Assembly: GCF_964204645.1 (NCBI RefSeq)
Contig: NC_134031.1
Location: 17,471,807 to 17,535,806, forward strand
Direction: 5' to 3'
DNA: 64,000 bases
From: Tubulanus polymorphus
Lineage: Eukaryota; Animalia; Nemertea
Each line of letters begins with the position of its first letter. Positions within the stretch are counted from its first letter, which is position 1. The translations under genes and the position numbers were made by a program. Under the pieces are notes generated by a model. That model ran no database searches. It saw only the letters and a list, made by a program, of their open reading frames with translations, and was not told where the DNA came from. Of this stretch, positions 1,102 to 49,300 are shown one piece after another.

Positions 1102-2372
1102 TCAAGTCAACATATAAAGAGAATCCGTCCAAACTATTTTGTAGCTTTGCAAGTCACCAACCCTCAGGTAAATAAAATTCAAGTACATGTACAGTGTACC
1201 CTATAATTTTTGCTCGTATCGGTTTCGAAAGTGTATGCTGTAACGGTATATGTATCTTGATTTTCTAGATCCATTCAGCATTGTCTGATGTACAGGCACA
1301 GATTTTGGCGAAATGTCCTGAAATCGAAGAAGCCATGGTCGATATTAAGACTTTGCATGTTACAGTTATGGTGCTTCATGTGGAGAAGTGTGAAGAGAGC
1401 TTCAACAGGCGAGGAAAATCCTTACAAATATTTAGATCATAATATTTGGAGCTTGAATCATGTCGAGAATGAATTTTCCTTTTTTTCCAGGTTAAAAATG
1501 GCAATGGACAATTGTCAATCGAGAATAGACCAGGAGCTTGGAGGCCAATCTTTGGAAATTACATTCAAAGGTCTTGGTCATTTCAAACATAATGTGCTGT
1601 TCGCATCTCCCGTAGAAAATGAAAACCTTCTTCGATTAAGGAAAACAGCAGGTACGTGCGTAACCAGAACTAGGCCTTCTCTTTAAATCATGTGTTCTGC
1701 TGTCCTGATAAGCTTCAGTTCAACAGTTATTGGTCTGAACTGTATTCTATACTTACCAGAACTGGGCCTGCTCTTTAAATCAAATATTTTATTGTCCTGA
1801 TAAGCTTCAGTTCAACCAGTTTCGGGTTTAAGCTGTGTTCAATGCCAGCAGTTAGATTCAATTGGAAGTAAGCAAGATTTTTATTCCAAGACACAACCAA
1901 TCCTGGCCTCTCGTACTGTATGATTTTTTCAGAATGTGTTAATGCAGAATTCAAAGCACAAAATATTTCTAGTACAGATAGAGATGGTAAAGTTTTCAGA
2001 CCACATTTAACAATTCTTAAACTGTCCGATTTGTCGCCAAAGTTGAGAAAAAAAGGTGAGGATTTCAGAATGATTTGTTTTTGATTTCATCGATGCCATA
2101 TGAACCGGGTTTACTGGTTTTGCTGTATCTAAAAAAAAAATTTCATCTGCTTCACTTCTTCCTTCCATTGATCAATAATCATTGTGTTTATGTTACCAGG
2201 TATAAAAAGAATTGAACCCGAATTGTACGCGGAGTTTGTCGGTGTTGAATTCGGTGAAGACGTTTTCAAAAGTATCCAGCTGTGTGAAATGAAGAGAGAT
2301 GAAGAGACCGGTTACTACAGAATCGCTTACGAAGTTACTTTGAATAAAACTAATGAGAAATCTAAACGCTGA
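1102..2372 (+). CDS. AKAP7: AKAP7-like 2H phosphoesterase (AKAP7_NLS-type domain); spliced, 5' end unresolved
   Basis: Exons 1102-1167, 1269-1408, 1491-1651, 1933-2055 and 2200-2372 join in frame: ...RIRPNYFVALQVTNPQIHSAL...KTLHVTVMVL...ITFKGLGHFKHNVLFA...FRPHLTILKLS...KKGIKRIEPELY...FGEDVFKSIQLCEMK...GYY*. This contains both HxT motifs of the 2H family and the RPNYF, F.GLG.F...VLF, PHLT..KLS and QLC.M motifs typical of AKAP7. AATAAA lies at ~2496. The start codon exon was not identified; orthology is from motif recognition only. Confidence 0.85.
1663..1845. repeat. Diverged ~93-bp tandem duplication in an AKAP7-like intron
   Basis: ACCAGAACT.GGCCT.CTCTTTAAATCA...TGTCCTGATAAGCTTCAGTTCAAC occurs twice. 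Confidence 0.8.
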
Positions 2373-2805: not shown

Positions 2806-3861
2806 AACAGAATTACGTAGGCCTTCTATCAAAAGCTGATGAGGAAGAATGGAAGAAGGCAAATGTTACGTCTTTGTGATTATATCATATAACGTGTGCT
2901 GGTATTTGAAAACACCAGGTGTATCCATAGGGATACCCAGTTATCGGCCCTAGCTATACTGATATACACTGTACTATGATAATATATAACCAATTGAAAA
3001 TGAATTTGGTTCAATCATGTTATCGTATGTGGTATTCCGAATTGCACGAAAGTACGTTGACGAAATTTGGACATGAATTAAAATCGGGACGTTGAGGTGC
3101 TCCACTTAATAAATTATCCTTTGTCCGGATCTTTCTTCCTGTCAGTCGAGTTTCTGCTGCTTGAGGAATTTAGGTAATAAAAAGACACTATTCTTCAACA
3201 ACGGGCACATAGTTTATTCATAAAATCAAAAAATAAATTAGTTTTCATTTTTACAACCGGTTTATTCTATCTTTAATGAAGGGTCTCTCTTGACGAAGAA
3301 CGTGGTCATCCACGACACCAATAGACTAACAATTCAACAGTACGCGCTATATGTAACCACTAATCATGCATATTCGTACGTATAAACGAACTTAATGCAC
3401 ATTAATATTCTCCAGTTTCTATCGTCCGTCAGTTTCAATATAGGCTATAACACGATAGTTCTTATGCGTCCCAGACAACATTCAGTTCGTTCGCAGAAAG
3501 AAAACCACACGGTATCCCCCACCGTCAGTTGCCGATCCCCCTGTGCAGAGCTGACCAAGAGTAGCGTATTATATCACAAATAAAAACTTATCATAACGAA
3601 AACTATGTAATGCCAGGTTCAACAACACGAAGGTAATTAATACCACCCAGACCGTGTATTGTCCTGTGGTACAATAATATAACAGCGTACACATGTACGT
3701 AGGCTAATGCCAGGGTTTGCTAATATTATTTGATTTGTCATAATAGCTGGTTTATCATTTGATTTCAAAAATGGGCAAGTTGTCGATTTTTCCGTGATGT
3801 TTTTCTTCGAAAATGTTTTTTCTCTTGTGATGAGATTCGTATTGCTTTCAGCGCGTACCCA

Positions 3862-6800
3862 TCAAGCCGCTGCGGGTTCAGAGTCTTTACCGTCGTTGGC
3901 GGTTGCACTACCGGCCGGTCCAGCATGGCGCTTTCCTTTCTGGGCAAAACTCAGAGCCGAGCCCAGGTGACGTTTCACCGTTGTATCGCTTTGTTTCTCG
4001 TCGTTTTCTGAACGTTTTCCCGATCGCCAAGCCATCAGTGAACCGAGGTTTCGCTTTTCGTCTTCATTGTCTCGTTTACTACTTCGCCACGACATCGCCG
4101 CGCCCATATGCCGCTTGCCGCTACGCCAAGCCGAAGCTGATCCTATGTGTCTTTTCTCAAAATCGCCTTCATCGTCGCGCTTACCGGTTCTCCACGCCAC
4201 GAATGAACCCATGTGTCGTTTATACTCTTCGCCCGATTCTCTTTTTCCACCTCTCCATCTCATCATCGATCCCATGTGTCGTTTAATCTCGTCTCCTAGC
4301 TCCTCATTATCTCCGACAGCGTCGAATCTAGACGCTATTTGTCCAACGTCATGGTCATACAACTCCCGCTTCCCAACAAATCTCATGGTTGCTCCGATAT
4401 GTCGTTTATCATCAATTATATCATCGAACTCTCTTTTCCCCGCGAAATTTCTTGCAGAACCTAAATTTCTTTTTCCAGCGAAATTTCTGGCTGAACCTAA
4501 ATTTCTTTTGCCGTCTTCAAATTCCCTTTTTCCAGCGAAATTTCTTGCTGAACCTAAATTTCTTTTGTCGTCTTCAAATTCCCTTTTTCCAGCGAAATTT
4601 CTTGCTGAACCTAAATTTCTTTTTTCATCACCGAATTCTCTTTTTCCAGCAAAATTTCTGGCTGAACCTAAATTTCTTTTGTCGTCTTCAAATTCCCTTT
4701 TTCCAGCGAAATTTCTTGCTGAACCTAAATTTCTTTTTTCATCACCGAATTCTCTTTTTCCAGCAAAATTTCTGGCTGAACCTAAATTTCTTTTTTCGTC
4801 TTCAAATTCTCTTTTTCCAGCGAAATTTCTGGCTGAACCTAAATTTCTTTTTTCGTCTTCAAATTCCCTTTTGCCAGCGAAATTTCTTGCTGAACCTAAA
4901 TTTCTTTTTTCGTCTTCAAATTCCCTTTTTCCAGCGAAATTTCTTGCTGAACCTAAATTTCTTTTGTCGTCTCCGAATTCCCTTTTTCCAGCGAAATTTC
5001 TCGCTGAACCTAAATTTCTTTTTTCGTCTTCGAATTCTCTTTTTCCAGCGAAATTTCTCGCTGAACCTAAATTTCTTTTTTCGTCTTCGAATTCTCTTTT
5101 TCCAGCGAAATTTCTCGCTGAACCTAAATTTCTTTTTTCGTCTTCGAATTCTCTTTTTCCAGCGAAATTTCTCGCTGAACCTAAATTTCTTTTTTCGTCT
5201 TCGAATTCTCTTTTTCCAGCGAAATTTCTTGCTGATCCTAAATTTCTTTTGCCCGCAAAATTACGTGTTGAACCGAGATGGCGCTTCTCATTTTCGATAT
5301 CTTCCGATTCCCTTTTTCCCGCAAAATTTCGAGCAGAACCGATGTTTCTTTTTTCATTTTCCGCCGAGTCTCGTTTTCCAGTAAATCTCATAGTTGCCCC
5401 CAGGTGTCGCTTATCCATTTCGTCAGCTCCGTTCCTTTTACCGGCCGCAAAGTTTCGCACGGAGCCTAGATGCCGTTTCTCTTCCGCAGAGTCTCGTTTT
5501 CCTGCAAAGTTCCTCGCCGAACCAAGATGTCGTTTTTCACCCTCGATATCGTCAGATTCTCGCTTTCCAGCAGCAAAATTACGCGCGGAACCTAAATTCC
5601 GTTTTTCATTTTCCGCAGAGTCTCGTTTCCCGCTAAATCTCATAGTTGCCCCTAGGTGTCGCTTATCCATTTCGTCAGCTTCCTCCCTTTTACCGGCCGC
5701 GAAGTTTCGCACGGATCCTAAATGCCGTTTTTCTTCGTCGATATCAAATTCTCGCTTCCCGGCAAAATTCCTTGCAGCGCCTAAATTTCTTTTTTCGGCG
5801 TCGTCATCGAATTCGCGCTTTCCGACGAATCTCATCGTTGCGCCTAAATGCCGCTTCACACTTTCCATATCTTCCCTTTTGCCGGCGAAGTTTCTCGCTG
5901 CGCCTAAGTTTCGTTTTGCCTCTTGTTCCTCTTCGTCTCTCTTACCTCTGTGGTGGAAACCCCAGTTTTTCGCTGAGCCGATGTTTCTTTTATCCTCCAG
6001 GTAATCGCGTTTTCCCCATCGGAATGCCGCTCCCAGATGTCGTTTATCTGCGGGATCGTTGAATAGATTATCGTATCTCTTGCCCCACATATAAGCAGAT
6101 GCTAAATGACGCTTGGACGTGTCGCGTTTACGTCTGCTGGGAAACCGCGCCGATCTCGACAGCCATTGCGGGTAATTCGACTGGCCCCATTCTTCCGTTT
6201 CGTAATCATCGTCGACGTCTTCGTCGCGTCTGTCGTGATCAGGCGACTGGGCATTTTCGACCAAACGACTGAAATACGGTTCGTACTTGTACGAATTCTC
6301 GCGAGACCTGTCGGAGGTTTTCCACCAAGGTCGTCCGTCGTCGGCTCTCGTACGAACCAACGAGCTCAGGAATCTACGATCGCGGTAGTTCAAGTCATCG
6401 TAGAACGGAGGCGAATAGCCGACACCCGCGCTCTCTCCTCTGAATGGATAATATCTCATCGCTGGTTTCGGAATCCAGTTGTGTCGGGCCAGTGACGCGA
6501 TGTGCCGCTTTGAAATCTGAAAATACACAGAAACATTGTTTTAAGTAAATACAATAATCTATCATCTATTTCACTTATCTCGTCAAAATCTGAATAACGT
6601 TGACTTTGAATAGTTGTAATGTGTCTTGAGATATTTGTCCATTGCATATTCATCCTCGCATCAACGTTCTTGATGTTTACATAGAAAAATATTTTCCCCA
6701 TCGCGTTCACAGAATCGAGGCATTTTTGATATGGCATTCACATTATATATTAAATTCTTTCGCACATCGTATTATATTAATCAGTTACTGGTCGAATGTT

Positions 6801-9548
6801 TATAACACGTCGCTAAGTGATATCTATGTAGTATCTTCAACGAATTCGTGATAACGGGTGGAAATTCCTAAATATTACTTGGCGAGCATGAATTATGCAT
6901 GTTGACAAAAGAACTCATTTGAATTGTTAATCCTCTAACTAAAACATCAGACAAAACTGGGTGACGGCCAATTTTTCTTCAAATCTCAGCTTCGACACGC
7001 AGTCCATCAGTAAACGCTGTCGTTGGTAAATGTAAGAATAACGACCAGATTGTTTTCACAACCTTTTCATGTCGGCTCGTTTTCCTTTTTACGTTCGCGT
7101 GTGTTGTACCTGATAATTTGCCAATACGACTGCTCGGACGCGGAGTTTTCGACAATGTTTACCCGGAGATCTCATTTCGCGCGGACAGAACACATTCGGT
7201 AAATAAGACATCAAGCGACTTTGTCTACAAGTCTTAAGCCAACGCATCGGGTTTCAATATCATTAAAACTCCCCCGTGGCTGAGTAAGACGTATGGAATG
7301 ATGTTTTCTAGACTGCGTTCGTCTTATGGTTCCGATCCTTAGCTAAACTTACCAAAATTCAATCGTTCTACGTAGGCCTTACTTTGAAATTTTGCCGAAT
7401 TCCTTTTTTTTTGGGTATTTTTCAATACACCCTTAGGACTTCTGCTGTTGTCCTTAACGGAATATCACCCGACAACAGCTAACTAGGAGATGCATGATGG
7501 CATATAAATGAAGTAACATCTCTCACCGGCCTGGGGTTAAGTACAATGGGCAGGATTGTCGCGAAGGAACATGTACGAATCTTTCCCTAATTACTTATTT
7601 AGTGATATTGCGTGGGTCTGTTTCGTTTTTATTTTCTTCCATCGGAATCAATAATAGACGTAATAACGGAAAGGTTCGCCGAAAGGAGGCAATGTGTGCT
7701 TGCATCCACTTCCTGTCATATTAGCCGTCATTCAGGTAGAAATTACGAGGGATTTTTAGTCGCTGACATTTATACTGTTAAGAATTATGAACGCAAGTCA
7801 AGCCGGAACTTCCACTTGAATAAAGGGCGTTCGCACTCCCTCCGCCTTGCTCGTGATACCTATGGTAAACCACTAAAATCCATTTCTTAAAAAGTCAATT
7901 TCTTAGAAAGCCTTCCATTTGATTCTCGACTAAGGTATCACGTCAACCTGGTCCCAACGCTTCGAGTAGGACAAGGTTACTGCCCTCCGTCAGCTGATGG
8001 TTCACGCGAACCAGAAACGAAATTTCCAATTCTTTACTTCGATTTAAACAAAAGTTTATGTAAATTCAACCGACCATTCAATTTAACATTTTCTAATTCG
8101 AATTTCAAGATTAAACGATGGACTCGATGGAGAGTTTTAGAGTCCATGATTAAACCCACTGTCTCGTTCCCGGCAGGTAGGAAGGGACACGATAGATAAA
8201 CAGACAGATTAAGAAAAGCAAGATTAATTCGAAGCAGACAACTTATCATCGTTTACGTATACACTTCACTCCCTGTTTCTTTCACGGTCGTGAAGGCGAC
8301 CAAGAGGATAAAACAACATTGCATATCCTTGTAGATTTTGTAATAGTGATTAGGCTATTTATGGACCTCACTGCGCCGAAAATAACCACAACACGCTCGA
8401 TACGGTATTACTATTATCGAACTGATCAAGCGAATATACGTCTTTATTATATAAGACGGATTACTATTGTGAGGACAAAAAAAACAATGTAAGACCTACT
8501 GAAGCACCAAATCATTAATATCCATCATTTCTACGTCACCGCGTTAAAGTCGAATGCGAATGAACAGATTCTGAACATGACCTAACTAGATTGGTATCCA
8601 CATTTCTTCGTAAACGAATAAGCTATAATCAAAAATACACGATTTCTTAATTCGCAGTGTAGCCAATTAACTGGATTGACGTGATCCTATTATTCGTAGA
8701 TTCTTATTCAACCTAAAGAAAAATTTGTATTCTGACTATCTATATACGTATGTATGGTAAATATATTGACCATAATTTCCACGTTTTCAATGTAAGGACA
8801 TTTCAACTGGACAACTCTGTTCGAATTTTACTTTATTGTTCGTACGTTCAGAAATGTGGACATTCTAACGAAAACACGACACCCCGGGCGTACGTAGCTA
8901 CAAACGTATCATTCCTCATAAATGTCGAAGGAACTAATGGTTCTTTTTATTCGCTAAGAAACAGCGGTATCATGAAGGGGTACTTCGCCGAAAATATATA
9001 TGTATTTATCAACTACAACGTCTTGTTTCAAGCGCTGTGGACGACGTACGACTATACATTTTCATTAACGTCGATGTCTTGTATGACGAAGAATAAGATT
9101 CCCGTAGGAGACGAACTTATCAAATGTCCATCTAGACACTTCACTATGTAACGAATGGCCCCACTCTGTGCGCGGCTTTGTAACCCGAAGCAGCTCTCGT
9201 GATAACTGACAACGGAGATAGCATATTAACCGATATTGACGGGCTTTGATTTGTCGCCCACAGGTCGGACGCCGTGATCTCGATATTTGTCAGCCCATCG
9301 GGCAGAAAGGCATAATTAATATCAGATGTTTTTCATCTTTGTTTCGGCCCCGCCGTTGGGAATAGGATATAGTTAATGTCTATAGAAGCCTGCGCAGTTT
9401 ATACTGTCCTTTGAGGGAAAGGGCAAATGAAAAGCAGTATTTACTTGAAACTAATAAGAAATCATGTTATACGTACCGTTTTTCCTCGTATGTCAGTAAT
9501 GCAGACGATTAGAATCGCCATTATCAATAGAGCTAGCGTAGTCCCCAT
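3862..9548 (-). CDS. Large multi-copy neuropeptide precursor (~908 aa; NLGSARNFAamide / HLG- / HIG-type peptides; HIGA/NPLP1-like)
   Basis: Coding exon 9548-9477 reads MGTTLALLIMAILIVCITDIRGKT (signal-peptide-like; donor ACG|GTACGT, phase 0). It joins acceptor TTTTCAG| at 6516 (phase 0) and an 884-codon exon. That exon has ~36 KR-flanked related peptides, nearly all ending G-KR (amidation), separated by acidic spacers. AATAAA on the minus strand occurs at ~3213 and ~3261. Confidence 0.93.
4432..5244 (-). repeat. 57-bp coding tandem repeat (EFEDEKR-NLGSARNFAGKR) within the neuropeptide precursor
   Basis: Near-identical 57-nt units are directly visible. I count 15 exact NLGSARNFAG copies in the translation; two of them lack a preceding acidic spacer. 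Confidence 0.95.
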
Positions 9549-9635
9549 GCTACGTATTTTAAGAAGGCGGTTCTATAGAGAAATGTTTAGTTTAAAATGC
9601 CACTTCTTACACACGTTCGGCAACAGGCGACTCAC

Positions 9636-9650
9636 ATTGTCTGCCAGAAC
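9636..9650 (-). other. Candidate 15-nt 5'UTR micro-exon of the neuropeptide gene
   Basis: The minus strand reads TATTTTCCAG|GTTCTGGCAGACAAT|GTGAGT, i.e. a consensus acceptor and donor 15 nt apart. It lies 63 nt upstream of the acceptor (9572) of the signal-peptide exon. Confidence 0.55.
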
Positions 9651-12600
9651 CTGGAAAATAAGACAACGATACAATTCTTCAGTAATTATTGAAAGATGTC
9701 ATTGCACATTTTGGATACAAAAATGAATAGGGGTTGTTATCTCTAAGAATCACGTAACGCGTATGAGGGAGTTCGGGCAAAAAGTTTGTTTCAGATTGTT
9801 AGAGGGGAAATGGGTGTCTCGAAACCTCTGTTACATTTTGCTAAGTAATATCGCAAGGGTCTGATTTGTTAGATATTGTTACAAGGGAAAGGTAGTTAAA
9901 AACTTCCCCAAAAAATGTGTTACGTAAAACAGCCCTATATTATCCCTGGGTTTATTTACCCAATGACCAATATGTCGATAATATTTATAGAATACTTCTT
10001 GAATTTCAAGTTTTGAAAACACCTAAAAAGTCAACGTGGATTAAGCCTCGAGCTTTCGAACGATAGTGTCAAATTCAGATGCAGTCAAATAATTGGTGTA
10101 ATTTTTAGTTTCCGAATTATAACGGTCCAATCATCGGGTATGTTTACCAACATCGAAAAAACTAATCGGTGAAAATGTTTCGAAATCTTGTAGGTCTGCG
10201 TCACAGAGTAATCATCTTATAGATGAATGAAGCCGTAGAGGTCCACACGCGATTTGGATGCTCACTGATGTCAGACTAGCTAATCTGATCTGTCTGAATA
10301 GTTCACGGGAGCGCATCAACTTCTGCACATTCCTAGAGCTAAGTTCTATAGTGTGGTTGAAAAAATTGTCGTTCCACAGTTGCCATGTTACCACGGTTGT
10401 TTACTGATTACTGGTTTCGAGTTGCAGGTAGGAGAAGAGACCAGCGGCGATTCGCCGCCGGTTCCTGTCAAATCGAGCAGTTCCGACTGAAAGGGCGGCT
10501 CATAATTTGTTAGACGCTTCGGCCGTATTCCCTTGAATAACTCGCAGGCACAGGCTGACATCGGATTCTTACGAACTGACATGGCTAATAATATCAAATA
10601 AGTTTGTATAAGCCTGATTTACTGCGTCTTTCGCGAGCGCTCAGTCATTTTAATACTGTAAATTTCCACCGTTTGGCGGTTACGTCGGCGCCAACGGTGA
10701 CAACAGCAATTAACGTATATTTCTAATTAAATTTCTAAGACCTGATGTGATCCTGTCGCCAAATAACACGTAGCGCATCTATCATCCGTAGCTTCACCGA
10801 CGTAAAACGCGATACCGCGCAGTCCAAGGCCGCGACGTGCCCCGAAAACAAAGAACTGTACGCTGTTACGTTTCACAGAACCGTCCAAGACCTCCCTGAT
10901 CAAACCAATTAACGTCCCTCTGATGTTCAGTCACATTTTCTCTAATTAAAACGCTTGTAATGACAACTCATCATCATGCAGTGTTTAATTGTAAAGGAGA
11001 ACCTCTCCCGGAGGCCAGACTTGCTGCAAGTCGAGATTGAAGTGAAAATCCTTATGATGTTGATTCTTTTAAAAAAAACCGTTGTGCAATACGGGTGAAG
11101 GTGGCCATAGAAAAAAAACCCAACCTTAATTCTGAGTAAAACTATGATAGTATATTGTTATAGATCAAGCTATATGATGGCTATATGACACTTGTTCATT
11201 TTTAAATCACGTTGTAGTAGTGTAAAACCCTTCACGTTTTCAGCAGAAGTTGTGGTTGTAGTCGAATGGTGACGTTTATCCGTTTTAAAAGTGACAATTC
11301 GGCACGGCGATAGCTGACGACAAGTCCGTCGGTTTAAAAACTAACACGCATTATCAATAATTCACGATGAAACTATTACGCAGCGATGTGTCGCTGTCAC
11401 TTTGTCAATAAATTGCCGCGAGTTTTTGTCGGAGCCAATACGATCACCTCTACTGATAAAAGTTTTACCAGCACTCTTTGCTGTGTTAACTTTGTGTAGG
11501 ACAGAAAAAAAAGAACTATTACTAACGAAATTGACTTGAAAATAATCAGGATCCCGTTTCCGACTTAAATGATTCATATCCGATTAGCTATTGTTTTGAT
11601 AGACGATAAGTGTATAGTCGAAACGTTGAACAAACAATACTCTAGATAAAGAATAAGATTTTTGGACTTTTTCGTCTTTACAGTGAGATTCTTGTAATAA
11701 CAATTCACTATATATTTCCGACATCATTTGCTGAAGTCTAAAACGCCAATATCCAACAGCAGAATCCACCGCTCTCCGATTTTGTAGCACATTCAGGCCC
11801 CGATAGAACACTTTGCTATGGCTCGTGCTTCCGTCGATTCCGTGGGAACATAACCATTACGATCAATCACTAAACATATGAAAATATCAAAGCCACTATT
11901 AAATCCTTTTTCTCTTAACATGTATTTTATTAACAGGAAACGCAGAATGCACTATGGTCGATACTGTTGCTGTTTATGTTCACACAATAGTAAATTGCCT
12001 ATACCACCCAGTCAACCGAGATAAAAAAATGCGCCATACATATTCGTTCTAACCGTTAGAGAACCATTAGAAAAAGTACAACAAAACACCGCATCACTCC
12101 CCCATCGCTAAAAAATCGTGCGGCTTCGTCTCCCGAATTGCGACGCAGGATTTTATCTTACATCGATCCACAGACTTTGAGAAAGAGTCCGCGGATTGAT
12201 CCGAATGGAGAACAGTCTGCGTAGCCGGAAATCAAAGATGAAAACAGGTTGCCGTCTGCCGGAAGTTATCTGTCACAACGTTCGTTAACAAACCCTTCAA
12301 TGGTAAACCATACTTGAGAAGTTGGAGATGAGAGATTTTTCTCGCGTTTAATTGAAACCTGCCCCGGGTTCCTTTTTACCTACAACTCTACGTATTTCAA
12401 TACTTTATGTCGATTCTTTCTTATTCATATTTTGTATTTTATGACCAATATCGTTACTGAATTCAATACCATCCTATGAAGGACTGTTGCTAAGTGGACT
12501 CGAAAGGTTTTTGGGACTGCTTGCGAGAAGCCTCTTGTGGCCGGATTCTTTTTTGTTTGAACGTACATTAAATATTCAAGGATTCGCTTGGATCACCGTG

Positions 12601-43300: not shown

Positions 43301-46300
43301 GACAAACTCTACAGCTGCTTAATAACCAGTGCAACCAGTTGAATCATATCGTTTCATTATTCCAACTGCTGCAAACCGAAGAAGCTGGACCTATCACTGA
43401 ACAAGGTAATTTATGTATTCGCTAAAAGAAGACTTGTGCGATCCTAAATTGGCGATTATTTTTACGCGAAAATCAAAATTCTTGTATTGATTATTTAGGT
43501 TTGCGAGATTTAGTCAGTAAGAGCAGTGTGGTAACGTTACTGTTACAATTTACGCAGATGGTTCAGTGGTTTTTAGCCGCTCGGTTGCTGCCTGAAAACG
43601 AAGGTAAATTTCAAAATCATCAATATGTCTAGTTAAAACCCTTTCAGTGCTAACTTGTCAACTATCATCCGATTTCAAAAGAAGGCGATCCTATCATCTG
43701 GAGTCCGTTTATTACCGATAGATACGATGCATTTCAGAGAACTCGTATCCACCGGACGACCAGTACGCGTACCCAGTAACGTCGATACTCGCGGCATTTT
43801 CTGACCGACGCCAGGAATTGAGAAATATCCACTCGGATAGCGTGTTCCATGATTTATTGATGATCGATGGTATGGTCAATCAATTCGGCGATGAATTACG
43901 TCAAGTTTGGTTAAAAGAGGGCGGTACCGGAGTATACCCTCCAGCTAGTATACATGTAAGATTTAAATGAAAATATTCTCGGTTTAATGCCCCGAAATTC
44001 TAAATCTGAAATGTCCGTCATCATAATTCTAGGCGTTGCTGTCGATCTATTTATTGAACGGAGTTCCGTTGATGTTGAAACACAGTATAGTCGCGTATTT
44101 CATCCTCGACCTCATCTCTCTGCAAGCAGACGGTCGTCATGACAATATTACCGATTGTTGGTCGGGATTTTGTCAGAGGTTCTCACTGCCGCTCGGACTT
44201 ACTCGACTTATACATGGCATGTGGCAACTCGATCATAAAGACAGTGAGGTAAAAATCTCTACTGAGATTGTAGTTTTTGGGTCGTTCTTTATTCAAATAT
44301 GGTCAAACTTCTTTAAGTCATTGTAAAGAACAGTTGTAGTTGGGACCATTGATATGTTGATGACTTATTCGAGTTAAGTCTTATGCTAGTCGCAATGTTT
44401 TGCTTACTGCGATGAGATGTGTCTCTCCCAGTGGCAAGCAACATACTTTGCTCTGACAGGACTAGTCGCACACTTTTGCTGGTAATCGCATTGCAGTTGA
44501 TCTAAGCGCCCATTTACGACCAGTTTCAACCGATTGCGTCATACAAACAGTCGCAAATCAACCTACGCCTGCTTTAGTAAATTAAAACTTAAAATACGAA
44601 CTGGGACTCCGCAAGAGAGCCAGCATAAGTGATGTGATGACTGATGTGTACATTTCAGGAAGCGTTGAAAACGTTATTGGATCCGATGGTTGAGAAAGTG
44701 CTTCAACCCTGGCATCATAGACGTATATTGAAATCGTTCCTGTATCAAGGTCACGCTCGTTATGCACTGAGATATTTACACACGAGACGTCCGACAATCG
44801 TCTCGGCCGATGACGTCAAATTGAAACTCGATATTCTTCTAGCTAATGGGTTTGTAGATTATTTACGACATACATAGATAGGTTGCATGATATCTTCTAC
44901 AGTAGACTTGTTTAAAATTTTACTTATCCCAATCATCACTCTGACTACCCTGGAGGAAATCTATTGGTCCTATCTCGAATCAACAGCAGGATCTACTCTA
45001 TCAATAACTTCATCTATAAACAATTAATGCGGTTGGCATATCATTTAGTTTCGAGAATAATTCTGTAATGGCTCAATCTGGGGTCTCTGCTAGTCAGTAA
45101 TCTGTCTGTGGTTTAGTTTCACAATCGGATATTTTCAAAAACCACATTTTGGTATAAGCCCGTCCGATTAAAGAAGCTTACCACCAATGATTAGGTTAAT
45201 AACTAGGGCCTGTACTATATGCGTGTATCCTTCATTTACTGTGTTCTTTTCTAAACCTGTTTTTCGTTGCTACTTGATAACAGTTGTACGTCTGAGGCTT
45301 TCCATTACCAACGCTCTTGTCGCGATCAAATTAACTCTACAGACCTTCTTCGACATTTCTATCGAGGATGCCTTGAAAGTGAGTCGAGATTTTCATGAAT
45401 TTCGTACAGTTACGATGCTCATCTTCCCCGATTAACCACTGACTAATGACTTCATTATATCGTAAATAATTCTAGCTCAATCGATGGACAAGTTACTACA
45501 GCTGTCAATGAATAGTCAAGAAGAGGAAGCCCTCGTTTCTTACTTGAAAAACTGCGAGATAGATGGCGCCTACGCGGAGGAGTTGTTGACCATGCACTAT
45601 CTACAACGAGGCCGCTTTATCGAAGCCGTTCAACTGAACGAAAATTCAAAGCACAAAGCGCCGGTGGATGCCGACATGAGCCGGCGTACGGCTGCCCGCA
45701 ACGCCATCGTTAAAGGATACATGTCCGTTTTGCCGAACGTGCAGCGAAAATTCATCTATATGTCGAGCGGCGCCGCGTCGCAGCCGACGACGAAGAAAAG
45801 CGTGATCGCGCGACCGAAACCGCTGTCGACCGTCGTGAATAAAGATCACGGCGCTAAAGTGGTATCGCAGGCGAGTCTGATTCTCGCCGTGTTAGACAAA
45901 GTCGAAGAAACGAATCTACAAGAGGATCTACAAAACGATCCGAGGTAAAAATGACGTAAATCCCCGTTTGGAAGCTACCTTTCATCCATTCCCGGTCCTA
46001 CGCCGTGTTGTGTTTCTCTGCTTGTCCTGGGATCTTAGCCTTGAGCTTCGGCAGCGAATAAAGATTTACTCATAGATTTTATACGATGTATTATTTGAGA
46101 TACGACCTACAACAATGGCGTCATTCTCCCATCTTCAAATCATATGATGTATATTGATTCATACTTAACAATATATTTTGGAATATTGGGAAATCAGAAA
46201 CATCTAGAAAATAAATCAGGGAAAACTCGACAAATTCTGTCAAAAGTCAGAAAATTTCGAAATGCTTGACCACACGTTTCTTTATCAATACTTGACTCAT

Positions 46301-49300
46301 TGAAAATGAATTAATTGTAACATTTAAAACCAAGAAATTCCTTGGATTTACTCAGGGAAAACTCAGAGAATTAGTAAATTGGTGGAAAGTGACCTCCCTG
46401 GTCTAATTGAAACGGTGAAATGGCGCAGTGTATTTTATTTTATATAATCTTATTATTTGCAATGTAAAATATTTGGCTATATTTTGTTGTGGCATTGATG
46501 ATTTCAGAGAAACAAGTCAAGTTGTTTACGCCAGCATCATCGAGGAATTGAGTGATGGCCCGCCTGTCAGTAACACGCCATCGAAACTAGCATTCGGTTT
46601 ATCTCCTGTGAAGTCATTCCAAAAACGTTCCGACTCGGCAAAAAAGTAAGGACTTCTTAGGCATTAATGATGGTAGTTTGAGTAAGTAACATCTACATTA
46701 ATATTGTGCGTTCGATTTTAGAAAAACTCCGTATTACAACGCTGAAGCGATGGCTTTGTTGAAAACGCCACCGATCAGACATAAACCGGCTAGCAAAACT
46801 CCGATGTCGGCAAAACCGGCGCGCGCGTCGACACCTCAGTCAATCCTGAAAGTTCGTCAGATTAATGACGCCGTGACTTCATCTGCGACCAAGAAAGATT
46901 ACTCGGTTAAAGGCAGACGCATCCTAGGTATGTAGTGAATACTTTGAAAAATCTTTAGGGCCATTCATAAAGCGGGAATGCGAAACTTTCTGGTTTTCAG
47001 TAGTTGGGTTCGTAAACATGACTAAGGCAATCAATAGTACTTAACATACCGTAGCTGCTTTGAAATGTTTGAAATGCTCTTAAAAGTTTCTAAAAGTTTA
47101 TCATCCCTACTGCAGATCTAATCTCGAGTGAGAAAGAAACAGTTTCGTCTCCACTGGCGAAGTCGCCCGCCGTTTCTAGACTGCAAAAACAGACGACGAC
47201 TCCGCAGCAGACGTCATCGCCCGACCGTAAACAGTTACGATTCTCGATGCCCGGCGATACGACGACGGACAAACCTACCGATACGTCGTCGCGCGTCGAT
47301 GCCAGCAGCTCGTTGTTGCGTGCTGCGCAGCTGAAATCGATGTCGTCAAAAAAAGTTTCCATCTTAACTGAGCAGTCTCCCGATGCATCCATGGATACGA
47401 GTGAACAAGAGATTACTTTCAAATCGTCAAAAGGTAGAAATTGTTGTTATGTTTGCCTTCTTATTCATATTTACCCTTTACAGTCAATACAGTCACTCCT
47501 TCCATATAGAAAACTATCACTTTTGGCTTCAATGGTATGGCATTTTCTATTTAACTCACCGCGGCTTGACGGGTAGTATGGTGCTACCTTCTAAATACAA
47601 ACTAAAACCAATCGTGAAATGAGTGAAAAAATACAGTGATGAAGTTAATTACAATGGATGATAGACTGATTTTATGATTTTTTTTAAAGTTACTGGTGAA
47701 TAGTACGAGCTGTTTCTAATTTTCGATGTTGTGTTTTGATAGTTGCCGCCGCTGGTGGAGACAACGCGCACATCGGAAGACATTCACCCGTCGAGCCGAC
47801 CGAACAACCTTCAGCCTCGCAATCATTCCTCGGTCGATTGTTCTCATTCGGGACTCCCGAGCAGAAGTCATCTCCCGCAACTCGACTGTTCACCGGTGAA
47901 ACGTCGGAATCGACGCGACGAGTCGCCCATTCAATCGACGACGAATCGCAAGACGACGACGATGATCAGGAAGACGACGAAGAGGAAGAAGAGAAAGCCG
48001 ATGACGCCGACGACGAGGAAACAGTCGAAGATGAAGCGACGATGGAAGAGGGAGAAGATGAGGAGGATGTTATATCATCAGGAGATTCGGTCATTACCGA
48101 GGAGGATGCGGCACTACTAACGCCACCTGTCGTTCCTGAAGAGAAAACGGTGAATAAATAATCAGTTTACTGATTTAGATTTAGTTTTACAATTCGAGAT
48201 GACATTTTTGAAAAGTTTGAGAATGTTTGGTGTTATATATGACTGGTTCATGTTTGTGTATTTCTATTGATTTTTAGGTTGAAGAAGTGACGCCCACTGG
48301 GTCATCGGATGAATCGGAGATGTCAGGAGAACCAGGTATGTTTTAATACGTATTCGACCGATTCCTGATAGAAGTATGAAGAAAACTCCACCCTATGTGT
48401 TAGCGTTGGGAATGTAACTGTAAATGTGTCATGTCTGATGCAGGTACCTTAAGCGCCTCTCTTAAATTGTTCTTTATGAAGGTGCTGCTATGAAATGAGT
48501 CCTTGTTTCGTGGTTTTGTATGAAAGTTTCTATAAATTAAGTTTTTCTCTAGTTGTTTTTGAAAAATATTAATTTTGCTCGAAACGACTGATGTAAAAAC
48601 ATCGACGTTTGTTTTGTAGAACGAGACAGAACTCGTCAGAAGTCGCCGTTGTCGTCCGGATCGTTCATGATGCAAATGCGATCGGGAAAAGGAGGCCGCG
48701 ACCAAAGTCCAGATGAGGTTAAGCCTTCTCAGGAATCTCCAGAAAAAACAGGTAGGTTAGAGCGAATTGTTGCTCTGAGAATCGTTGATATTTCGTCTAT
48801 CATCCGAAATTATTAAATCGTGATTTGTGTTCGTTAACATTAGGAATGCAGCACAGTTTTACATTCGCGACGCCGGTTCCTGTGGAAACAGATGCAGGTG
48901 AGAGATAAACAACGGTCTTAGTGGACCTGGAAAACTGGGAAAATTCAGGGAATGGGAAAAATGTAGAAAACAGAGAAACTGTTGAAATCTGCCAAAATTT
49001 TGGAAACTGGGAATTTAGATATGCTATTGACCACGTATGTCTTTATGAATATGTGATTCATGAATAATGGTTATAGATTGTGACATTTTAAACAAAGAGA
49101 TTTCTCAATTTAAAATTCCATGGAATTCAGGAAATTTTGTGTTATAACATGGAAAACTCAAAGGGAATTTGTAAATGGGTGGAAGGTGGCGGCACCCTGT
49201 AGCATATGAAACTCCTGTTTTGCCCATCATGTAGTCGGTGGTTGTTGGAATATTTCTTTTCACTTTTGTAGCTTCTATCGAAAACAGTATATCTACGACG

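Follow-up and report, generated by a model that had tools for sequence, protein, structure and literature searches.

Which gene is represented by an open reading frame (ORF) of 888 codons that contains no in-frame methionine with a hydrophobic leader, and to which family does its product belong? This question is raised by a 64,000-nucleotide stretch of DNA from the ribbon worm Tubulanus polymorphus, hereafter the window, whose own positions serve as coordinates throughout. The ORF lies at 3862..6528 in the ORF listing of the window, on the minus strand, which carries the whole gene. A preliminary description of this DNA had presented it as the body of a neuropeptide precursor devoid of a signal peptide, and the missing leader is confirmed here. 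We find that it belongs to a two-exon gene for a large neuropeptide precursor, and that this gene is real. The best explanation overall, in which we place high confidence, is that it is the single HIGA-family proneuropeptide gene of this ribbon worm.

Peptide content of the precursor

Cutting the product of coding exon 2 at its KR sites by script yielded 36 peptides that start with [HN][LIM][GA][SA] directly after the KR, 15 of them with His and 21 with Asn as first residue. In 35 of the 36, a C-terminal Gly precedes the next KR. The commonest peptide, NLGSARNFA-G, is present in 15 copies, and NLGAARNFA-G and HLGSVRNFAA-G in two copies each, accompanied by the further RNFA peptides NLGSARNFAA-G, HLGSARNFA-G, NIGSARNFA-G and HLGSTRNFA-G. 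Four peptides follow the pattern H[LI]GATMRF[VST]-G, and the mixed region holds the W-type peptides HLASAYMW-G, HLGAAFRW-G and NIGSAKNWGFHHR-G. The C-terminal set comprises HMGSMMRWRG-G, HMGSFVAWRT-G, HIGSASAWRS-G, HMGAAMSWRSS, NLGSLMAWRS-G and HLGSALSFAQK-G, HMGAAMSWRSS being the one peptide without a C-terminal Gly. Upstream of the peptide set lies a domain of 130 residues, which opens with KR-HIASLARHNWIPKPAMRYYPF and contains RR-FLSSLVRTR and DYETEEWGQ.

The script reproduced the counts given in the preliminary description, about 36 related peptides and 15 copies of amidated NLGSARNFA. The entries of its peptide list and their numbers stand, but the list had omitted the four single-copy RNFA peptides named above as well as the non-amidated HMGAAMSWRSS. 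Its observation that the peptides are conserved at their N-terminus also holds.

The run of NLGSARNFA units coincides with a tandem repeat at 4464-5250 (57-bp unit, 13.8 copies, 93% identity). Among the 15 copies of the 36-nucleotide stretch that encodes the peptide and its GKR (NLGSARNFAGKR), nine types of nucleotide variant occur at seven codons and all are synonymous, an outcome with an estimated chance of ~4e-6 on the assumption that about a quarter of random changes are synonymous. In the acidic spacer of five residues between the units, E/G/D replacements occur. The tandem array and the purely synonymous variation of the peptide codons show that this coding pattern is no product of chance. 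Purifying selection on the peptide is visible in the array, which would have grown by recent unequal crossing-over of the 57-bp unit while the peptide itself was kept under purifying selection.

On the opposite strand, two long ORFs face the peptide array, at 4067-6004(+) (645 residues) and 4389-5384(+) (331 residues). Their translations are monotonous (..FPAKFLAEPKF.. and ..NLNFFF..), and GC and AT skew are about -0.33 in 4001-6000. We read these antisense ORFs as by-products of the purine-rich repeat, not as genes.

The precursor and the nemertean HIGA family

The supplementary list of Thiel et al. 2021 (Mol Biol Evol, PMC8557429) contains 18 nemertean HIGA precursors from nine species. Those with complete 5' ends share one layout, consisting of a signal peptide, KRH[IL][AG]SLARxNW[IL]PKPxxRYYPF, RR-YLGSLLRS and DYETExWG, and this N-terminal domain is followed by KR-HLGS.. 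peptides, many of which end in GKR. Compared by eye with the 18 printed sequences, the window protein displays the same nemertean-type N-terminal domain, with KRHIASLARHNWIPKPAMRYYPF and DYETEEWGQ. Its closest published counterpart is HIGA_Nemertea_Tubulanus_polymorphus_comp33153 from that list, in which KRHIASLARLNWIPKPSMRYYPF and the KRHIASLARHNWIPKPAMRYYPF of the window have 21 of 23 residues in common (KRHIASLAR.NWIPKP.MRYYPF) and DYETEEWGQ is identical. The first predicted amidated peptides also come in the same order, HLGAAYNW-GKR and then NIGAARNWGSRYR-GKR in the transcript, HLASAYMW/HLGAAFRW and then NIGSAKNWGFHHR in the window gene. In addition, the end of the transcript's signal peptide, ..EDIRVKAVTKRH, parallels ..TDIRGKT|ISKRH read over the predicted splice site. 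By contrast, the rest of the published transcript is clearly unlike the window gene, with no RNFA array and no NLGSARNFA. None of the listed nemertean HIGAs has a 15-copy NLGSARNFA-amide array or RNFA/MRFx peptides, and the gene is also set apart by the 21 of its 36 peptides that begin with Asn instead of His. Whereas most published entries are partial transcripts, the window gene is a complete genomic model of 908 residues; it thus adds a full gene, with its intron and a 15-copy array of predicted amidated peptides, to a family represented so far largely by incomplete transcripts.

Protein search and a DYETE.WG pattern search both indicate one gene of HIGA type in the genome, and neither returned a second HIGA gene matching the published Tubulanus transcript. 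Since the genome holds one HIGA gene and this gene is unlike that transcript, the latter may derive from another species or population, or the name given to the genome's species may be loose. A search of the genome for mitochondrial COX1 gave no match.

Outside nemerteans, HIGA is known from the annelid Platynereis dumerilii (GenBank KF515947; Conzelmann et al. 2013, PMC3890597), where the precursor strings together KR-H[IL]GAAM[NR]L.. peptides. Four of them were detected by mass spectrometry, and expression is stage-specific (supplements of the same paper). The two proteins resemble each other in that the Platynereis precursor is also very long, holds ~32 peptides of the form H[ILM]G[AS]A[ML][NR].. 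that are flanked by KR and have conserved N-termini, and includes a few W-type peptides, such as HMGAAMNWRNSK.., comparable to HMGAAMSWRSS of the window. They differ in that the Platynereis peptides are mostly longer and non-amidated, with Gly preceding LK/TK/PK rather than KR, and in that neither the HIASLAR..NWIPKP peptide nor DYETEEWG occurs in the N-terminal domain of the Platynereis precursor. HIGA-like proteins were also found among the search matches of the window protein (P0058, E 1.2e-30; P0004, E 1.6e-20), each made up of successive KRH[LMI]G[APS]A[ML].. peptides; both are environmental or assembly records, and the label HIGA-like was assigned in this analysis.

The preliminary description had assigned the gene to an annelid HIGA-like family and suggested that its peptides might be undescribed. 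The HIGA assignment is upheld by the N-terminal layout and the peptide starts, but the restriction to annelids is contradicted by the 18 nemertean precursors in nine species (PMC8557429). Likewise, NLGSARNFA is indeed absent from the published Tubulanus sequence, but the family has already been catalogued in nemerteans, including a Tubulanus orthologue, which lowers the novelty. The strings GSARNF, GAARNF and GATMRF occurred in no main text of the literature searched, and the only two works there that use HIGA as the name of a peptide report no receptor for it. In a phylum that has received little study, the peptides predicted here, NLGSARNFA-NH2 and others, offer concrete targets for peptidomics and receptor screening.

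Several points weigh against the assignment to a HIGA-family proneuropeptide gene. Family membership is judged from motif and architecture, and Pfam gave no match for the window protein, for insect NPLP1 or for the HIGA-like P0004. The published 'T. polymorphus' HIGA transcript differs from the gene, leaving a loose end in either species name or orthology. Cleavage and amidation of the peptides are predicted steps. The signal-peptide exon is likewise a prediction, called on a hydrophobic core of 13 residues (LALLIMAILIVCI), and its junction with exon 2 is placed by splice signals, phase and homology to the nemertean cDNAs of the published list.

An early guess, the mollusc LRNFVamide family, was not followed, the HIGA match having made it unnecessary.

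Positions 7776-11698 of a 1.39-Mb contig (L002; ENA ERZ25767047) encode a giant precursor of HIGA-like type that is at least 1,300 residues long. It consists of alternating HLGSAMKFGHWNNEND and HMGAALAA-GKR units and is split in two reading frames near 9500, by a frameshift or an assembly error.

Resemblance to arthropod NPLP1

A word search over ~5.8 billion proteins gave, in its first round, six matches to the window protein: P0001-P0003 (E 5e-21 to 2e-16), the HIGA-like P0004, the lobster protein P0006 and the weak P0005 (E 3e-7). A search with P0002 showed P0001-P0003 to be insect NPLP1 ("neuropeptide-like 1"), the nearest named one coming from the louse Menopon gallinae, and returned dozens of named NPLP1 orthologues, from termites to spiders. 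Every match of the window protein at E ~1e-15 or better was NPLP1 or HIGA-like, with no other named neuropeptide family. The NPLP1s of louse type (P0001-P0003 and P0007-P0012, Logan assemblies) contain runs of N[LIV]G[AS]ARNF.. peptides, e.g. NLGSARNFG-GKR, a form that other insects lack. The near-identity between louse NLGSARNFG and ribbon-worm NLGSARNFA therefore looks like a parallel change that inflates the E-values, and for this reason the louse group was excluded from all further NPLP1 tests.

Does the remaining likeness reflect common descent? On balance we favour the view that HIGA, in annelids and nemerteans, and NPLP1, in arthropods, constitute one ancient protostome neuropeptide family. 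The alternative, which appears possible but rather unlikely, is that multi-copy precursors have converged and that relatives of the gene are confined to annelids and nemerteans. In favour of convergence are the parallel change that has to be accepted for the louse-type peptides and the restriction of the likeness to peptides of 8-12 residues. Against it are the word search, in which the weak P0005 was the only entry other than NPLP1 and HIGA-like proteins, and the results of three comparisons that used no louse sequences.

First, a profile hidden Markov model (HMM) of 16 non-louse insect NPLP1s was run against the 1,220 six-frame ORFs of the window, with E-values at genome scale (Z = 5.1 million ORFs). 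The window ORF was the sole significant match (E below 1), with E 1.9e-31 and 117 bits (best domain 2.3e-6), and the next ORFs had E above 100. The C-terminal segment at 3865..4401 alone reached E 6e-7 with low bias. When residues were shuffled within segments only, keeping KR, C-terminal Gly, segments and spacers in place (n = 200), the scores collapsed to -33 +/- 9 bits (maximum 17.6), compared with 115 bits for the real sequence, indicating that the match stems from the sequences of the peptides themselves rather than from the regular spacing of KR/GKR. Tested alone, the N-terminal 159 residues gave E 3.4 at genome scale, which is not significant and is a point in favour of convergence.

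Second, a position matrix was derived from 315 distinct 8-mers that follow dibasic sites in non-louse arthropod NPLP1s. The window peptides scored z = 13.4 against their own shuffles, and 9 of 45 distinct window units reached at least 5 bits, compared with 0 of 859 control 8-mers from other ORFs of the window. On this matrix, which contains arthropod units only, HIASLARH scored 20.5 bits, for which the chance per 8-mer is 2e-8.

Third, the peptide HIG[SA]LARLGWLP, present in 13 insect NPLP1s (from cockroach, stick insects, bugs, locust, beetles and wasp), is near the window's HIASLARHNWIP and the HIASLARLNWIP of the Tubulanus cDNA; the most conserved insect peptide thus matches the most conserved nemertean one, HIASLAR[HL]NWIP. 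BLASTP of the N-terminal 159 residues against locust NPLP1 aligned the peptides of this type, with a pairwise E of 6e-5. If the two families are one, the nemertean HIASLARHNWIP would be the counterpart of HIG[SA]LARLGWLP.

The general layout is also shared. Arthropod NPLP1s (Periplaneta P0015, Schistocerca P0038, Tribolium P0044/P0049, Parasteatoda P0035) are multi-copy precursors whose peptides are conserved at the N-terminus, as [NSYH][ILV][GA][SA][LM]A[RK], and their YLASLVR resembles RR-FLSSLVR of the window protein. In their genes, a phase-0 intron separates the first coding exon, which holds the signal peptide, from one large peptide exon; the intron follows codon 22 in Tribolium madens NPLP1, codon 16 in Parasteatoda NPLP1 and codon 24 in the window gene. 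This common gene plan speaks against convergence, but it is weak evidence because it is widespread among neuropeptide genes.

Other features separate the window protein from NPLP1. The arthropod consensus ends in a C-terminal module, EYPMPVxQN..DYEDL..KRFLG, and its absence from the window protein, which has neither PMPV nor KRFLG, again fits convergence. NPLP1 peptides are usually longer, with a ..LP.. core, and are less often amidated. In insects, HIGxLARLGWLP is situated towards the C-terminus of the precursor (for Tribolium madens, in the region that a small 3' exon covers), whereas its look-alike comes first in nemerteans, and Tribolium NPLP1 has extra 3' exons. Whole-genome six-frame searches with cockroach and spider NPLP1 queries did not return the window gene, the locus never being among the scored candidates, and a language-model atlas retrieved only generic arthropod multi-copy precursors, with scores of 0.78-0.81, all below 0.9; both results can be counted on the side of convergence. 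Because the C-terminal module is missing, the N-terminal domain is not significant, the genome queries missed the gene and the atlas matches are generic, we do not class the window gene as a member of NPLP1.

The look-alikes in the language-model atlas, arthropod tachykinin and myoinhibitory/prothoracicostatic precursors, have the same generic design: a signal peptide followed by numerous short, amidated peptides, with KR sites and acidic spacers. They share no peptide motif with the window protein, however, are conserved at the C-terminus of their peptides, and were not among the sequence-search matches.

No paper linking HIGA to NPLP1, nor NPLP1 to lophotrochozoans in that sense, was found in the literature searched, supplements and closed journals lying outside the search. 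We regard the NPLP1 resemblance as the part most worth following. Should common descent be its cause, two orphan families, one "arthropod-only" and the other "spiralian-only", would become one protostome family, and HIGA and NPLP1 could borrow each other's functional and receptor leads. The one receptor named in PMC3863949 is a receptor guanylyl cyclase, for Drosophila NPLP1-VQQ; orthologues of NPLP1 receptors such as this one would then be the first candidates for a HIGA receptor.

The genome matches of the spider NPLP1 query correspond to a simple tandem repeat, TRLAATTKDG, repeated ~25x in one frame at 2007-2855 of L008 (G000:C3:26631506-26632354).

Exons, intron and reading frame

The positions of the exons, the intron and the peptide regions are collected in Table 1. 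Stops close the frame of the ORF just upstream of the acceptor at 6516 (ttttcag|ATT), after which exon 2 begins. Joined to coding exon 1, it forms a model of 24 + 884 = 908 residues. The preliminary description had proposed a 24-codon signal-peptide exon about 3 kb upstream and in phase, and this exon came out as the top candidate. When every ATG-to-GT phase-0 segment of 15-45 codons within 15.5 kb upstream was considered (n = 109), the hydrophobic core of exon 1 ranked first, and its donor, ACG|GTACGT, is near the usual consensus. The published Tubulanus HIGA is a cDNA and is therefore the best available support for the predicted junction.

Table 1 Features of the HIGA-family gene, in window positions
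Feature	Position	Strand	Description
Coding exon 1	9477..9548	minus	72 nt, 24 codons, MGTTLALLIMAILIVCITDIRGKT; predicted signal peptide; donor ACG|GTACGT
Intron	6517..9476	minus	2,960 nt, GT..AG, phase 0
Coding exon 2	3862..6516	minus	2,655 nt; 884 codons + stop codon (3862-3864); carries all peptides
First peptide after KR, HIASLARHNWIPKPAMRYYPF...	6442..6504	minus	Most conserved nemertean HIGA element; best match to insect NPLP1 HIG[SA]LARLGWLP
DYETEEWGQ motif of nemertean HIGA N-terminal domain	6181..6207	minus	Single occurrence in genome
Mixed amidated-peptide region (predicted)	5245..6108	minus	HLASAYMWa, HLGAAFRWa, NIGSAKNWGFHHRa, N/HLG[SA][AVT]RNFA(A)a, HLGATMRF[VST]a; 126/252-bp higher-order repeats
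15 identical NLGSARNFA-GKR units	4438..5244	minus	Short acidic spacers, 57-bp period
C-terminal group	3865..4401	minus	HIGATMRFVa, HMGSMMRWRGa, HMGSFVAWRTa, HIGSASAWRSa, HMGAAMSWRSS, NLGSLMAWRSa, HLGSALSFAQKa, then 21-aa tail
Candidate polyadenylation signals	3213..3266	minus	AATAAA from 3266 and 3218, ATTAAA at 3277; motif only

Could exon 1 nevertheless be mis-assigned, the true first coding exon lying elsewhere or further small exons being present? We consider this improbable. In favour of a mis-assignment, neither a word search with the first 422 residues nor a look-up of the exact ORF sequence, starting at its first ATG, turned up a transcript of the same species, and a possible acceptor, ttttccag, is located ~95 nt upstream of the exon 1 ATG, so that an untranslated 5' exon may precede exon 1. 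On the other hand, exon 1 has the most hydrophobic core of the 109 candidates and a consensus-like donor, the phase across the junction is 0 with no stop, and the length of exon 1 and its last residues, ..DIRGKT|ISKRH, mirror the spliced Tubulanus cDNA, ..DIRVKAVTKRH. The AATAAA motifs at the other end of the HIGA gene lie ~600 nt past its stop codon.

Predicted processing and function

Domains of the processing enzymes are present in the genome: Cu2_monooxygen, a family that includes the PHM domain of the amidating enzyme, P_proprotein convertase, and 7B2, the PC2 helper. Together with the purifying selection on the peptides, these domains lend indirect support to the production of the predicted peptides. 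By analogy with the standard prohormone pathway, the precursor would enter the secretory route by means of the exon 1 signal peptide, proprotein convertases would cleave at KR/RR, and a carboxypeptidase would remove the basic residues. In 35 peptides, peptidylglycine alpha-amidating monooxygenase would then turn the C-terminal Gly into an amide. NLGSARNFA-NH2, with a calculated monoisotopic mass of ~947.49 Da and 15 copies per precursor, would be the main product, with H[LI]GATMRFx-NH2 and xxG[SA]xxxWRx-NH2 as minor sets and a long non-amidated HIASLARHNWIPKP... peptide in addition. Released from neurons, the peptides may serve as neuronal or neuroendocrine signals through a receptor, which would read the conserved N-terminus [HN][LIM]G[SA].

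Peptide toxins are numerous among the secretions of ribbon worms, and venom glands also contain multi-copy precursors processed at KR, which would suit a secreted non-neuronal role. That the products are proboscis or epidermal toxins, mucus or antimicrobial peptides rather than neuropeptides is nonetheless highly improbable, given that HIGA is expressed in Platynereis larvae with its peptides detected by mass spectrometry in a neuropeptidome study (PMC3890597), that nemertean orthologues are conserved across palaeo- and heteronemerteans (PMC8557429), that the peptides, cysteine-free, 8-13 residues long and predicted to be amidated, are typical of neuropeptides, and that the nearest outside relatives are the insect 'neuropeptide-like 1' proteins.

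Four evenly spaced pairs of Cu2_monooxygen exon matches, ~13 kb apart, occur at G000:C3:23388139-23427735, an arrangement that suggests a tandem cluster of copper monooxygenase (PHM/DBH-like) genes.

Neighbouring ORFs

Elsewhere in the window, a 132-residue ORF at 1288-1686(+) matches the AKAP7 2'5' RNA ligase-like domain (PF10469, E 7.7e-6, just over the cut-off) and is probably an exon of a neighbouring gene. Two longer exon-like ORFs, at 45484-45948(+) and 47736-48161(+), have no Pfam match and form part of another gene downstream; the second of these is very acidic (..DDDDDQEDDEEEEEKADDADDEE..).

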